A stretch of 64,000 nucleotides of DNA from NCBI RefSeq assembly GCF_006345805.1, contig NC_042999.1, positions 73,284,001 through 73,348,000 of the forward strand, in the 5' to 3' direction. The stretch is from Octopus sinensis (Eukaryota). Each line of letters starts with the position of its first letter. Within the stretch, counting starts at the first letter, position 1. This document shows, piece after piece, positions 32,432 through 45,387 of this stretch. The notes below the pieces were generated by a model. It made no database searches and was not told the DNA's origin. It worked only from the letters and a program-made list of their open reading frames with translations. The translations under genes were made by a program, and so were the position numbers.

Positions 32432-32434
32432 ATG
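32432..32434 (+). CDS. Exon 1 (5' UTR ~32325-32431 + ATG only) of the predicted secreted Cys-rich protein gene
   Basis: CCGACATG|GTAAGTAAG: purine at -3, consensus donor, phase 0 matching exon 2. Confidence 0.6.
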
Positions 32435-33497
32435 GTAAGTAAGAAGCGATGTTTGACTCTCTTTATTCTTTTTGTGACCACTCACCACCCCTTACGCCTC
32501 TATCTGATCGATTATTTCCTTCTTTTTCTTCTTTCACCCTCTCTCAGTATTCTTTACCTATGTACCTGTTGTATATTCATCAATATATTCTTTATATGTA
32601 TATTTGTCTATACATAACTTTGTTTTTTACGCGTATATGTTTGTGTTAATGTGATAAGACATGTCTCTCTTATACATACACAAGATAGATAAACACATAA
32701 ATAAGGATATGTATATATGTATATATATGTATGTAATGTACATATATATATATATATATATATATATACATGTCTATCTTTATGAATATATGGAATTTTT
32801 TAAATATATCTATATATATTAATACATATGTGTCAAGAAATCTAGAAAAAAGCTAAATAATAACATAATTGTACACATCTATATCTATATATATATATAT
32901 ATATATATATATATATATATATATATAATATATATATATATATATATTATATATATATATATACATATGCGTGTGTGTAATCACCATATGCTTTAAGCTT
33001 ATATAATTATCATAATTGTTATTTACAGGATTGTAAAACACACCCAGTATAACAAAACCATCCGCACCGATATATATATATATATTATATTATATTATAT
33101 ATATATATATATATATATAATGTGTGGTGTGTGGGTGTGTGGGTGTGTGTGTGTGTGGTGTGTGTTGTGTGTGTGTATTATATATATCTGAGACCCCCTT
33201 CGGTCACGACACTGATCATGGGATTGCATCTATGAACCTAGAAAGTTACCCTTCCAGGCAAGGTTGTTTATATATATATATATAGATATATATTATATAT
33301 ATATATATATCATATATATATATATATATATACACATTATATTATATATTATAATATATATAATATATATATATGTTATATATATATAAATAAAAATTAG
33401 GAATAATATTCCCTCAAATAATTATTATTATTATATGATATATATATAATGTGTATATATATGATATATATATATATATATATATATTATATATATA

Positions 33498-33709
33498 TGA
33501 TTAATCAAAGGTCATACTAAGTATGTCTACTGCTGGAGATAACGGTCAAAATTCTTATTTAAATCGCTAAAATACACTGATCATAACTACAGAAATCAAC
33601 CAAAGGCAGATCATGCTATTTTTTTCTTTAATAGTCATACCAGATAATAACAAAATCAATAATATCTAGTAAATTAAGTTCGGGAATTTTTTTTTCGTGA
33701 ACTCTCCCT
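33498..33709 (+). repeat. ~215-bp interspersed repeat; inverted copy at 37308-37528
   Basis: TGATTAATCAAAGGTCATACTAAGTATGTCTAC...TTCGTGAA..CCCT matches the reverse complement of 37308-37528 with scattered substitutions; both lie in TA tracts. Confidence 0.85.
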
Positions 33710-33859
33710 ACATATATATATATATATATATATATATATATAATATAATATATATATATATATATATATGTATGTATGTTGTTATGTATGTATGTATGTA
33801 TTTATGTATGTATGTATGTATGTATGTTATATTATATATATGTATAAAAATTATATATA

Positions 33860-33980
33860 AAAATACAAAATGGGACAAGAACTCAAAACACTCAAAGAGA
33901 CGACACAAAAAACGGACGGGTTATTCGAAGCCTCTAATCTTCAGTCAAGAACCGGATCATCCTCGCAATTTCGGCTGAGA
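33860..33980 (-). repeat. Interspersed repeat; related copy at 56150-56320 (+)
   Basis: Shared CAGCCGAAATTGCGAGGAT.ATC.GGTTCTT.ACTGAAGAT...TTCGAAT.ACCCG.CC...TTGTCCCATTTTGTATTTT. Confidence 0.8.
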
Positions 33981-41149: not shown

Positions 41150-43160
41150 ATGGATATAAAATGCTGGCTTTGTTATTGTATTTCCTCGTGTTAACTTATT
41201 CATTAACAAATGGTCTTGCACAGACAGCGCCTTTCTGAAAATTTGAAGGGAGATTTAGGGGCGCTCACTTGTCGGTCCTGATGTCCAACGGCTTCATGTG
41301 GCATGATTTTTTGTTTTTGCTTGTCTAATTCTCCGATGATAACTGGTACACCTTTCACTTGTGCTACTGGTTATCCCTACATTCTTGATATCTCTATATT
41401 TTCTATGTCTTTGTCTACAAGGTTTTTGCGTGAAGGAATTGAACGTTTGTAATGAGACATTATCTTTTTTCCTCCTGTCTAATATTTAATGGACAATATT
41501 TAATTATCCCATAAGATTTTTGGTTCACTAAGTTCATTTAGAGCTTTTACTGGTACGTGATTTTATCACTTGTCTTGAAGTGATGTATCCATGTTTTTTT
41601 ACAGAGTAGCCAGTGAAAATGGGAAAAACCTTATTAAGATGTCACTTTCTGAGATGACATTTTACAGACTGTAACAATATGATCAATATTTTCACACTCT
41701 AAGGCACCGAGCAGGCAGAATCATTACTGGACCAGGAAAAATGCTTAGTGACTTTTCTTTTGACTTTACGTTCTGAGTTCAAATGTCGCCAGGGTCTTAT
41801 TCGCTTTTTATCCTTTCAGCGTCGATAAAATAAGTACCAATTGAATATTGGGTCCGATATAATCGATTTACCCACTCCTCCGAAATTGTTAGCCTTGTGC
41901 CAAAATTTGAAACCATTCCGGAGCCACACTCTCGTTGAGTCATGATTTAGTGTCTCTGTGGAACTATCCATGTTACTGCATTTCTTCTAGTGCTTCGACT
42001 CTTTCATAAATTAATCTGCTTTGGTATGTTCTCACCTCTTCAAATTCTACACAAACAGATCCCAGGTCTTTTTTACTCATTGCATGCTTGTGGCTTACTG
42101 ATCTTTGTTCTTCGTTTACACATTCATAAAATCCTTAGTCTTTTCTCTCCAATCTTCCGCACCATATATAAATGACGGGAATTTACTCGCAGAAGTGTTT
42201 CAGGCATGGCTAGAAGTTTTCGTTTTTTGTGTCTTATGCATCTATTTCCTCTTTCGTCCAATGCATTAATCCAATGTTATAACACACAATGGCAACCACA
42301 GGTATTGATAACATTTGTCAAATTTCTTCAATTAAGTTTCGATTTCAATACAAGACTTCATCTTTAATACATTGTTTTCACTATTTTTTCGATGTCATCG
42401 GATTCCAGTATGCCTAGATGCTTGTATCCATTGTCATCTGGTTCTAAAATTGATTCATACGGTAAATTTATTTCATTAAAATTATCTCCCTTCCTTTCAG
42501 TCTTCTTTTTAAAGTTACCTTTGTCCAGCCACTTCCATGATGCTTCCTGATCTTTTAAGTTACTTTCATGGTGGAATTGCTCATGTACTACCATGCTGAG
42601 TAGTCTTCCTTCTCTCTCTTTGACTATTCGCGAGCAGAATTGATTAACACTCTCAATTTCATTGCTAATAAATCCTCCTGCATTAGCAGCGTACTGCAGC
42701 ATGTCTTGTTCGCTGCTTACCAAATACTCTGCCATGTTTCTTCTTTCACTGTCGATATACTCCGGTACGCTAATGAGGCTACGTCCACTTTTACACCTCT
42801 TCGTATAGAACCTGTGTACGTTCGCCTTAGGGTGAAGGGTACCAGCCATTGTCATCGCCTTTCGGGTAGTGCGATCAAGTTGGTAAATCTCCGCTCATGT
42901 TCATTTCAGGATAGGTGTACTATAGCGGACTACATAAACATCCCATATGTTGATGGCAGTCACAAGGTTCCTTGAGTTGAAATTTGTCTTCAAGAGAAGT
43001 TTAGGGTGCTTCAAATATTTCCCTGTGCAAGATATTGTCCAGCTCCAGGATCCCAAGGCACTTGTACCCATCATCCGGGTCTCTCATTCACCCTCCGTTT
43101 GGCAGTCGTATGCCCCTACAATCTACTGATTTTCCTCCTTTTCCAAGAGAGAAGCGCACA
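41150..43160 (-). mobile_element. Two tandem degraded Dong/R4-like fragments split by a SINE
   Basis: PDDGYKCLGILELD...LHPKANVHRFY...WKWLDKG (42480-43130); the motif restarts with EPDDNGYKHLGILESD (42364-42480), then HWTKEEID, KILWD, VPVIIGELD; 5' flank is a (TTA/TAG/TTG)n tract. Confidence 0.8.
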
Positions 43161-45101
43161 CTTTGAGATCCCGAATTCCATTCCTATATTCTTGTTGTTG
43201 TGATTATTATTATTACTATATTAGTAGTAGTAGCAGCAGTAGTAGTAATAGTAATAGCAGTAGCAGCAATAGTAGTAGTAGTGTTGTCATTGTTGTTGTT
43301 GCTATTGTTACTGATCTTATTCCTGTTGTTGTGGTTGTTGTTGATATTACTGTTATTCGTTCTATTCTTTGCAGGTGTAAATACCCCTTCGGAAAAAGAG
43401 GAAATGATGACACACGAAGTCGCTGGGAAGAAATCCTCAGTAGCAGCAAATGGAGGATGAGATGAACTTGCAGATTATAGAATCCAGAGAATTGATTGAA
43501 CTAATCGACCAGTGCTTCCAGTTTGCCTAAAATCTCACTTTAAGGAACTGAGGATATGAACTATTAAAACCACTTTAAACACACACATGCACACACACAT
43601 ACACATACATACATACATACATATATACATACATAAATACATGTATGCATAAATACATACATACATACATACATATACATATATATAGCTACATATATAC
43701 ATAATATAAATGCATACGTATCTGTATGTATATATGTATATATGTGTGTGTGTGTATAAAGACATACACACACATATATAAATATATATATTACACACAC
43801 ATATACATATATATTATATATATATATAATATATATATATATATATATATATATATATATATATATATATATATATATATTATACGTGTGTGTTTACAAA
43901 CATTTCAACTACGATCTCTCCACCATTTTTGAGATGTAAATATTTTTTTTTAAATCAACCGTGCATAAGTGCTCCTCCGTATCCATCTGGTTAAAATTTA
44001 ACTTGTTGAAACGAAGACAGTTTTTCTGTGTAAGTTTATTGAGTATACATATATGTGTGTGTATATGTATGTATGCATATATATATATATAATATATAGA
44101 TATATATATATATATATATATATATATATATATATATATAATATATATTATATATAATATATATATATATATATAATATATATTTATATTACTTTAAACA
44201 GTTTCACTTGGTTTCCGTGATACTTCAAGTTTCGCAGGCCCTTAACGTAGCTCGTCTTGTTCAGGCTCATACATACATACACATACACACATACACATTA
44301 ATATATATATATATATTATATATATATATATAATATATATATATAATATATATATATATACATATGTACATACATACGTACGTATGTATGTATGTAAGTA
44401 TGTATGTATGTATGTATGTATGTATGTATGTATGTATGTATGTATGTATGTATACGGACCAACAAAGAAAGAACCGTTTATGTTAAACATGGTATATATT
44501 TGTAGATTAGCAGTTATTTCCTTAAGTTAAATCTTCAGATTTCCACGATCCTCTTAAGAAGTAGACATTTGTCTGAGTGTCTTTGAAACTGATTAGTAGT
44601 CATGGAAACTATTAATTGTTAACATATATACATAAACACATGCATACATACATACATAAATACACACACCACACACACATACACACACACAACACACACA
44701 CACACACACCACACACACACACACACACACATATATATATATATAATATATTATATATATATATATATATATATATATATATATATATATATACGTATGT
44801 ATGTATAGGATATTATTGTAATTTACGATTTTTTTCGTTATTGGTTCGTGGGTTTAGAATTTCTGCTCACTGCCCCGATGTATCAGTGAAATTTGTGATT
44901 GCAGTCATCTTCTGACTGCTGTTTGTAGCATGGTGGTGCTATTTGTAGCACCCTTAATTATTATATATAATATATATATATATATATATATATATATATA
45001 TATATATATATATATATATATATATATATATATACATGCTGTGTCGTGTATGTATATGCGTATAAGTATGTGTACAGAACTATGTCTCTCTGTTACTGCA
45101 G

Positions 45102-45174
45102 AAAGAATAACTTCACTAAGAATGCGTACGACTTGTTCCTAGAATCGGAAATACCAAACTGCTCATTTTTCTGA
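45102..45174 (+). CDS. Exon 3 coding part with the 8th Cys and stop
   Basis: CTATGTCTCTCTGTTACTGCAG|A; phase 2 gives (S)KNNFTKNAYDLFLESEIPNCSFF*; AATAAA about 210 nt downstream. Confidence 0.62.
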
Positions 45175-45381
45175 TCGAAGTAACGTATACACTTCTCCCC
45201 TATCCATAGCTACATAACTGTTGTTAGTACTTTTATTTATCTATATATTTATTTATTCATTTATTTACTTATTGCTAACTACAGTATCTTGCCACTCGTT
45301 CAACTTGTGTATTTCATACTAATGACGCCGGAAGGTAATTTTCCTCTAGTCGTCCTTACATTTGTAACACTGTTGTTTCTC

Positions 45382-45387
45382 AATAAA
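45382..45387 (+). promoter_or_regulatory. Candidate polyadenylation signal
   Basis: First AATAAA after the exon 3 stop, followed by U/GU-rich sequence. Confidence 0.45.

Follow-up and report, generated by a model that had tools for sequence, protein, structure and literature searches.

A window of 64,000 nucleotides (nt) from Octopus sinensis (contig NC_042999.1, positions 73,284,001 to 73,348,000) contains a real three-exon gene that encodes the precursor of a small secreted peptide with eight cysteines (Cys). By the window we mean this whole stretch at its full length; positions refer to it unless stated otherwise, and the features are listed in Table 1. The start codon, exon 2 and the exon at 43375 together encode 95 amino acids, a product that is identical letter for letter to the O. 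vulgaris protein CAI9719515.1 (A0AA36ANN7). The O. bimaculoides protein A0A0L8IFG7 is 88% identical over all 95 residues, and has the same exon plan and the same ending. In O. vulgaris, the gene spans positions 3001-14650 of locus L015, starting on the same ATG^GTAAGT (^ marks a splice junction) and ending on the same TGA. The frame, the stop position, the splice sites and the eight Cys are intact in both of these species.

The initial annotation, made from the sequence alone, had described a hidden gene that is invisible to a track of open reading frames. The invisibility is borne out, given a first exon of one codon and introns of several kilobases (kb), and the locus shows how such an arrangement can evade open-reading-frame tracks and, apparently, one RefSeq annotation too. 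The word hidden applies to O. sinensis, for which no identical RefSeq protein is on record, but not to the sister species, whose orthologs had already been deposited, either as 'hypothetical' or with a name assigned by an automatic domain rule; the papers searched gave no description of their function, expression or processing.

Exon structure of the window gene

Exon 2 had been proposed on the basis of its consensus splice sites and its phase (0/2), and both sites (TTTTCAG^ and ^GTAAGT) lie at the positions given for them. This exon is far beyond chance, because a paralogous exon has identical splice positions and 57% identity, and because there are orthologs in three other octopods. It encodes the remainder of the putative signal peptide and Cys 1 to 7; its sequence is 100% identical in O. 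vulgaris, and its protein is 91% identical to that of O. bimaculoides. We rejected comparison with O. vulgaris as a test of conservation, since the two genomes are 95-99% identical everywhere; around the window gene, this identity is to chromosome OX597816.1.

Exon 1 contributes only the start codon to the protein, as the initial annotation had proposed for the ATG^GTAAGT at 32432. Taken alone, ATGGTAAGT is only suggestive (0.05 occurrences are expected by chance in the 8.2 kb that precede exon 2). However, the O. vulgaris coding sequence starts on the same ATG, and a paralog of the gene has, in two species, the same kind of single-codon exon, ATG^GTAAGTAA. The Argonauta hians paralog gene model begins AAAAATG^GTAAGTAAAC, 18 kb upstream of its own exon 2, and a matching AGAATG^GTAAGTAAAC is found in O. 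sinensis, likewise 18 kb upstream of exon 2. When the upstream regions of the window gene and of the O. sinensis and Argonauta paralogs are aligned, all three have TATATATA roughly 105 nt ahead of the ATG; CAGTAG/TAGCAGC follows some 30 nt beyond TATATATA, and a CAAAG-TT-TT-CCGG-TTCT block is also shared. Because these three regions align, the ATG-only first coding exon (about 85 nt) is a trait of the family. The block CAAAGTTTATTTGCCGGGTTCT (32373-32394) and ATGGTAAGTAA are also common to the exon-1 regions of the window gene and the paralog. The TATA-like element of the window gene, ATATATATAT, aligns with GTATATATAA of the paralog exon-1 regions of O. sinensis and A. hians, and sits at the edge of a TA/CA microsatellite. 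We infer that exon 1 begins at the initiator-like TCTAGCAGC (32348-32356). A second ATGGTAAGT on the plus strand, at 19712, has no TATA element or untranslated block like that of exon 1, and about 0.4 occurrences are expected per 64 kb, so we attribute it to chance.

Exon 3 supplies Cys 8 and a Gly-Lys-Arg site. Its acceptor, ttattcgttctattctttgcag^G, is good and its phase is as required: TC^G encodes serine (Ser), which is followed by CKYPFGKRGNDDTRSRWEEILSSSKWRMR and the stop codon. The first AATAAA after the candidate polyadenylation signal ATTAAA (Table 1) is at 45382. Intron 2 also contains an open frame of 176 codons on the minus strand (42364-42894), which has no Pfam match.

Table 1. 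Features of the window, with strand and remarks
Feature	Position	Strand	Remarks
TATA-like element ATATATATAT	32316..32325	+	about 107 nt upstream of the ATG; putative promoter function
Exon 1	32348..32434	+	5' untranslated region and start codon only (coding sequence 32432-32434)
Intron 1	32435..40666	+	8.2 kb, GTAAGT...TTTTCAG, microsatellite-rich
Exon 2	40667..40860	+	194 nt, phase 0/2; codons 2-65 and two of the three bases of codon 66 (Ser)
Intron 2	40861..43374	+	2.5 kb, GTAAGT...TTTGCAG
Exon 3, coding part	43375..43465	+	third base of codon 66 (Ser), followed by CKYPF-GKR-GNDDTRSRWEEILSSSKWRMR; TGA at 43463-43465
Candidate polyadenylation signal ATTAAA	43563..43568	+	98 nt after the stop; putative
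Last exon of the initial annotation	45102..45177	+	present, single copy, in phase; unsupported as part of the window gene
Non-LTR (long terminal repeat) retrotransposon remnant	328-2853	-	RVT_1, E = 3.7e-33
Non-LTR retrotransposon remnant	13475-13864	-	RVT_1, E = 3.9e-07
Non-LTR retrotransposon remnant	53580-53972	+	RVT_1, E = 5.1e-09
Mariner/Tc1-type transposase-like frame	45823-46101	-	by eye; no Pfam match at E <= 0.001
Mariner/Tc1-type transposase-like frame	47869-48237	-	by eye; no Pfam match at E <= 0.001
Mariner/Tc1-type transposase-like frame	38833-39114	-	by eye; no Pfam match at E <= 0.001

The initial annotation had placed the last exon at 45102, which is not used by the model of any ortholog or paralog; the true last exon is 43375-43465. 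It is very improbable that exon 2 is spliced to 45102-45177, whether as the main form or as a rare isoform, to give an 89-residue protein ending ...NCSFF. This splice does yield such a product, from a good acceptor (75% pyrimidines, CAG^A) that opens 24 codons with one Cys, and an AATAAA follows 205 nt after the stop. However, these properties are not distinctive. The 23 kb that follow exon 2 contain 43 YAG acceptors that have a pyrimidine content of at least 70% and lead into an in-phase frame of 8 codons or more; with 16 of the 43, the number of Cys added is odd. The exon at 45102 is among these 16, and the first of them is the documented exon at 43375. Moreover, the 89-residue product is absent from a collection of about 15 billion proteins. 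As a query, it led to O. bimaculoides A0A0L8IFG7 (95 residues), which consists of the initiating Met and exon 2 followed by CNYPFGKRGNYDKRSRWGEIISSSKWRMR, not by the exon at 45102.

Comparison with the relatives of the gene points the same way. No coding sequence is called in the O. vulgaris annotation, which includes alternative forms, over the match to the 45102 exon (L015 16165). The exon has no counterpart in the paralog or in Argonauta, and tblastn and blastn searches for one over 57 kb of downstream sequence gave only low-complexity or chance matches. The exon at 43375, in contrast, is the homologue of the paralog's exon 3, with the same junction base of the codon, Cys, four residues and Gly-Lys-Arg. 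The 100% identity of the 45102 exon to O. vulgaris is uninformative, because the surrounding DNA is itself about 97% identical, and its repeat status gives no argument against it, because it is single copy.

Since the 45102 exon is unsupported, so are the last 23 residues, the position of Cys 8 and the end of the gene that depended on it. The AATAAA at 45382 is present as described, but not supported as the gene's end. An even number of Cys does require a third exon, as had been argued, but from a different position, and the framework, which had been thought to end in ...-x25-C, becomes C-x5-C-x6-C-x7-CC-x5-C-x4-C-x6-C. The locus illustrates that a splice partner may look plausible and yet be wrong when it is selected from the sequence alone. 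One of the transposase-like frames in Table 1 lies about 650 nt downstream of the 45102 exon.

A tandem paralog and the extent of the family

The paralog, LOC115209753, starts 49 kb downstream of the window gene and lies outside the window (contig positions 73376582-73400182). When the exon-2 peptide was compared with all six frames of the entire genome, a single further match was obtained, 70 kb downstream (E = 5.6e-11, 57% identity), with its acceptor and its GTAAGT donor at the same codon positions. The paralog is represented by XP_029634124.1 in O. sinensis, by LOC106869081 / A0A0L8IFA5 / XP_014770093.1 in O. bimaculoides, by CAI9719516.1 in O. vulgaris and by GAB1600580.1 in Argonauta hians; the two O. 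vulgaris genes carry consecutive accessions (CAI9719515 and CAI9719516).

The two genes share the three-exon plan with its phases and splice positions, the ATG-only exon 1, an A-x-A-G-C motif that closes the signal-like segment, and eight Cys, the eighth of which follows straight after the exon 2/3 junction, with Lys-Arg (KR) five residues later. In the paralog, exon 3 starts A^TGC AAT, i.e., with the third base of a Ser codon, then Cys, four residues and Gly-Lys-Arg. Its exon 2 is 188 nt long as compared to 194 nt, with two codons fewer between Cys 1 and Cys 2 and seven Cys kept, and its intron 1 measures 18 kb in both O. sinensis and Argonauta. The paralog differs from the window gene in being only about 50% identical to it, and in having C-terminal GSWN/GSWD units flanked by KR as well as a terminal helix. 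This tail reads GKR-SGWY-KR-GSWD-KR-GSWN-KK-SDDQT-KR-GSWN-KR-SDEEDS-KR-GSWN-KR-... and is predicted to be disordered. It looks like the layout of a multi-copy peptide precursor, in which small putative peptide units are fused to a Cys-rich domain. The tail of the window gene aligns with it as a short version without the repeats. The helix predicted after the repeat units of the paralog is amphipathic, and the Argonauta paralog retains one clean KR-GSWN-KK unit.

We searched for further members in two ways. Six-frame protein searches of the whole 2.72-Gb assembly (13,516 contigs) with both proteins found only the two loci. Weak genome matches on contigs C4 and C17 had E > 2, and a match on contig C22 (E = 0.047) was to the remnant of a mariner-type transposase; all of these were rejected. 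To find distant relatives, we scanned 1.84 billion representatives with a HMMER profile and conducted a profile search of 5.8 billion proteins, which together gave only three clusters. One contains the window gene's orthologs (O. bimaculoides and O. vulgaris), one the paralog in O. bimaculoides, O. vulgaris and O. sinensis, and one the paralog in Argonauta hians. As judged from these sequences, this is a family of two genes per genome that is found only in octopods. The features that characterize it, all of which the window gene has, are an ATG-only exon 1, an exon 2 of phase 0/2, eight Cys, of which Cys 8 lies at the opening of exon 3, and KR five residues after Cys 8.

The two genes evolve at unequal rates. 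Between Octopus and Argonauta, the paralog has a ratio of nonsynonymous to synonymous substitution rates (dN/dS) of 0.29 with a dS of 0.83, which indicates purifying selection. Between the window gene and the paralog, dN is 0.39 and dS is saturated, and the duplication is therefore old. When O. bimaculoides is compared to O. vulgaris and O. sinensis, 11 of the 95 residues of the window gene's product differ (signal peptide, 1; core, 6; tail, 4), and none of the 6 core differences affects a Cys. In the same comparison, only 1 of 140 residues differs in the paralog (Fisher p = 2.6e-4), so that the protein divergence of the window gene is about 16 times that of its sister. A fixed scaffold with fast-changing surface residues fits what might be expected of a ligand or effector under diversifying selection, or of relaxed constraint.

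Some information on expression is available for the paralog. In an atlas of the O. vulgaris paralarval brain, LOC115209753 is detected in 42.9% of cluster-2 cells and in 31.7% of all others, with an avg_logFC of 0.33 and an adjusted p of 0.004 (PMC9712504, Supplementary Data 5). Cluster 2 comprises 595 cells and is designated 'unstable', and the marker rows concerned are among clusters listed up to cluster 4, so that stronger signals in other clusters are possible (PMC9712504). Within these rows, the paralog is transcribed in the brain; peptidergic specificity is not implied.

Product, proposed processing and possible function

The corrected product retains the hydrophobic, signal-like N-terminus that had been recognized previously, and again has eight Cys. 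The Cys are at positions 27, 33, 40, 48-49, 55, 60 and 67, i.e., in the order 3 + CC + 3. In addition to the eight Cys, the residues that are invariant in all five sequences of the family are M1-V2-K3, a hydrophobic F-L-L, D20-S21, A23-x-A25-G26-C27, F37-F38, Y52, M56 and K73-R74. The N-terminus consists of MVK, a hydrophobic run of 15 residues and DSSADA, and a cut between Ala-Asp-Ala and Gly fits both the n/h/c-region plan and the -3/-1 rule, by which we placed the cleavage site. This segment is conserved in the paralogs and is predicted to be helical.

Based on these features, we propose the following maturation. The N-terminal 25 residues would act as a signal peptide that is cut off after Ala-Asp-Ala, and residues 26-71 would form a compact, four-disulfide core while passing through the secretory pathway. 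A proprotein convertase would then cut after Gly72-Lys73-Arg74, a carboxypeptidase would remove Lys-Arg, and peptidylglycine alpha-amidating monooxygenase (PAM) would convert Gly72 into the amide of Phe71. The expected products are a 46-residue amidated peptide (G26-F71, with an isoelectric point of 7.7) and a basic tail of 21 residues, and the mature peptide would most likely act outside the cell as a ligand, e.g., a neuropeptide, a hormone or a pheromone-type signal. These processing steps follow what is established for signal peptidase, PC1/3, PC2, carboxypeptidase E and PAM. The dibasic site K73-R74 is invariant in all five family sequences, Argonauta included, and in all four Octopus sequences it is preceded by Gly (FGKR or VGKR). 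The Gly-Lys-Arg site and the KR-flanked repeats of the tandem paralog were left out of the initial annotation, and are the features that are most informative on mechanism. An Asn-Leu-Ser at the exon 2/3 junction (40850-40860 / 43375-43377; residues 64-66) is a potential N-glycosylation sequon just before Cys 8; the O. bimaculoides ortholog keeps it, while the paralog has Asn-Pro-Ser, which is no sequon.

As to the fold, AlphaFold places helices at residues 29-42 and 48-60 of the window gene's product over the Cys core, and at residues 29-40 and 46-58 of the paralog. The core has a predicted local distance difference test (pLDDT) of 65-77 in both. A core in the form of a cystine-laddered hairpin of two helices is plausible as a model, because the Cys are spaced 5-7 residues apart on each predicted helix. 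Cystine-laddered helical hairpins with two or three disulfides are known from Aplysia attractin, a water-borne pheromone, and from cystine-stabilised alpha-alpha hairpins. The window product is similar to these in its two predicted antiparallel helices with Cys 5-7 residues apart, which we treat as a lead only; it differs in its four disulfides, and there is no sequence or Foldseek match to them at the low confidence of the model. The order C-C-C-CC-C-C-C also occurs among the peptide frameworks of cone snails, a likeness of pattern only. No Pfam family matches the window product, the O. bimaculoides ortholog or the paralogs at E <= 10, and neither a profile search of PDB nor Foldseek against PDB gave a match. 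The initial annotation's description of a small secreted protein of a family that it could not name thus still applies.

In precursor layout, the closest comparison that we can make is at the level of function, where the nearest analogues are amidated, disulfide-rich neuroendocrine peptides and the helical-hairpin pheromones. The crustacean hyperglycaemic hormone/ion-transport-peptide family and the arthropod agatoxin-like peptides have a signal peptide, a multi-disulfide core of 40-70 residues, a C-terminal end with Gly and basic residues, and an extra precursor-related peptide. As proposed, the window gene's precursor would be laid out similarly, but we do not claim that it belongs to either, as there is no sequence similarity and the number and spacing of Cys differ. 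We class the gene, which is itself already deposited for two sister species, as a new and uncharacterised one among the convertase-processed, disulfide-rich secreted peptides in general.

We consider it somewhat probable that the window gene, one of a two-gene family restricted to octopods, specifies a prepropeptide of 95 residues from which a convertase-processed, amidated peptide is released that most likely serves as an extracellular ligand. The exon structure and its conservation, the eight invariant Cys and the invariant Lys-Arg are the demonstrated part of this reading; signalling is our best guess at the function. If the amidated 46-mer is real, it would represent a family new to the repertoire of cephalopod peptides, and would provide a ligand with which to deorphanise receptors. 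At present, the gene is one of many uncharacterised lineage-specific genes of octopuses. Taken together, the two genes make a clean candidate for a secreted peptide family restricted to cephalopods, with a fixed eight-Cys scaffold, a conserved convertase site, unequal rates and one member expressed in the brain. A more far-reaching version must be regarded as tentative, namely that these are disulfide-laddered, convertase-processed (in Octopus, amidated) signalling peptides of a new octopod-specific family whose fold is not in PDB, with the paralog as a slowly evolving brain peptide and the window gene as a fast-evolving copy with a species-specific role, such as that of a pheromone or secreted effector.

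It is important to consider several points that weigh against the proposed ligand precursor. In the marker rows of the brain atlas, the paralog is found in about a third of brain cells, unlike a classical cell-type-specific neuropeptide. For the window gene itself, we sought transcript, peptide and expression records and found none; since RefSeq lists no identical protein for O. sinensis, there is no LOC identifier by which to trace it. The annotation pipeline for O. vulgaris also used protein alignments and ab initio prediction (PMC10700109), so that the O. vulgaris model may depend on that of O. bimaculoides. The divergence of 11/95 residues, as compared to 1/140, could be a sign of relaxed constraint, and not of a conserved ligand. 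The Argonauta paralog has Glu in place of the Gly needed for amidation (EKR), and amidation is not invariant in the family; since Gly is present in both Octopus genes, cleavage is the conserved step and amidation may not be. Finally, the AlphaFold models are of low confidence (mean pLDDT of 57 for the window product and 52 for the paralog), being based on 4-5 sequences.

The same structure and processing could also belong to an exocrine effector, i.e., a salivary or venom peptide, an antimicrobial peptide or a mucus peptide, which we judge to be unlikely. A lineage-restricted, tandemly duplicated family, in which the Cys scaffold and the processing sites are fixed while the residues between the Cys diverge fast, is compatible with such a role, and in venom peptides, too, it is common to find an amidated C-terminus and processing at dibasic sites. 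However, the family has not expanded beyond two copies, and its other member hardly varies among Octopus species and is found in brain cells. In addition, we found no paper with the family's accession numbers or characteristic peptide strings, octopus salivary and mucus proteome papers included; broader queries of the literature, covering WAP proteins and salivary peptides of octopuses as well as neuropeptide precursors, returned nothing specific.

A quite improbable explanation is that the window copy is a decaying, functionless duplicate that is weakly or never transcribed, and that only the downstream paralog is functional. The 16-fold difference in protein divergence, the apparent absence of the gene from the O. 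sinensis RefSeq annotation, and a C-terminal tail that resembles a shortened, degenerate form of the paralog's repeat region would all be in keeping with decay. Given the age of the duplication implied by the saturated dS, though, a dead copy should already be disrupted, and O. sinensis, O. vulgaris and O. bimaculoides all retain an intact frame, stop position, set of splice sites, eight Cys, A-x-A-G-C and Gly-Lys-Arg.

Least probable of all is a protein with a WAP or somatomedin-B (SMB) domain, acting as a protease inhibitor or binding module: UniProt automatically names the ortholog A0A0L8IFG7 'WAP domain-containing' and the paralog A0A0L8IFA5 'SMB domain-containing', and both domain types are small secreted modules with eight Cys including one CC pair, but the labels contradict each other for clear paralogs, the core is predicted to consist of two helices (at a pLDDT of only 65-77) where WAP and SMB cores are loop/beta, WAP having a beta-hairpin and loops, and no structure in PDB matches by sequence or fold. 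The Cys order also differs, 3 + CC + 3 as compared to 4 + CC + 2 in WAP and 5 + CC + 1 in SMB, and we rejected both WAP (PF00095) and SMB (PF01033), neither of which Pfam recognizes in any of the four proteins at E <= 10. The UniProt names are probably false positives of profiles on a Cys-rich sequence.

Repeats and other sequence in the window

Scans of the whole window (1-64000) for tRNA genes and Rfam families found no tRNA gene and no family at the gathering threshold. We noticed no other convincing host coding exon in the window, although no systematic exon search was made. The window has a G+C content of 34%, and is dense in microsatellites and retroelement fragments. The retrotransposon remnants in Table 1 are open frames that match the reverse transcriptase family RVT_1; one frame also matches zf-RVT just under the cut-off, and the transposase-like frames were recognized from strings such as ...PPYSPDIAPSDFHLF.... 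Microsatellites occur, e.g., at 3170-4430, 23400-24440, 31100-32330, 43580-45040 and 46340-46900, and are of the (TA)n, (CA)n, (TCTA)n and AAT/ATT types. In translation, the (TCTA)n-type repeats read SIYLSIYL and the AAT/ATT repeats read poly-Ile or poly-Asn, and they are the source of most of the long open frames in the six-frame translation.

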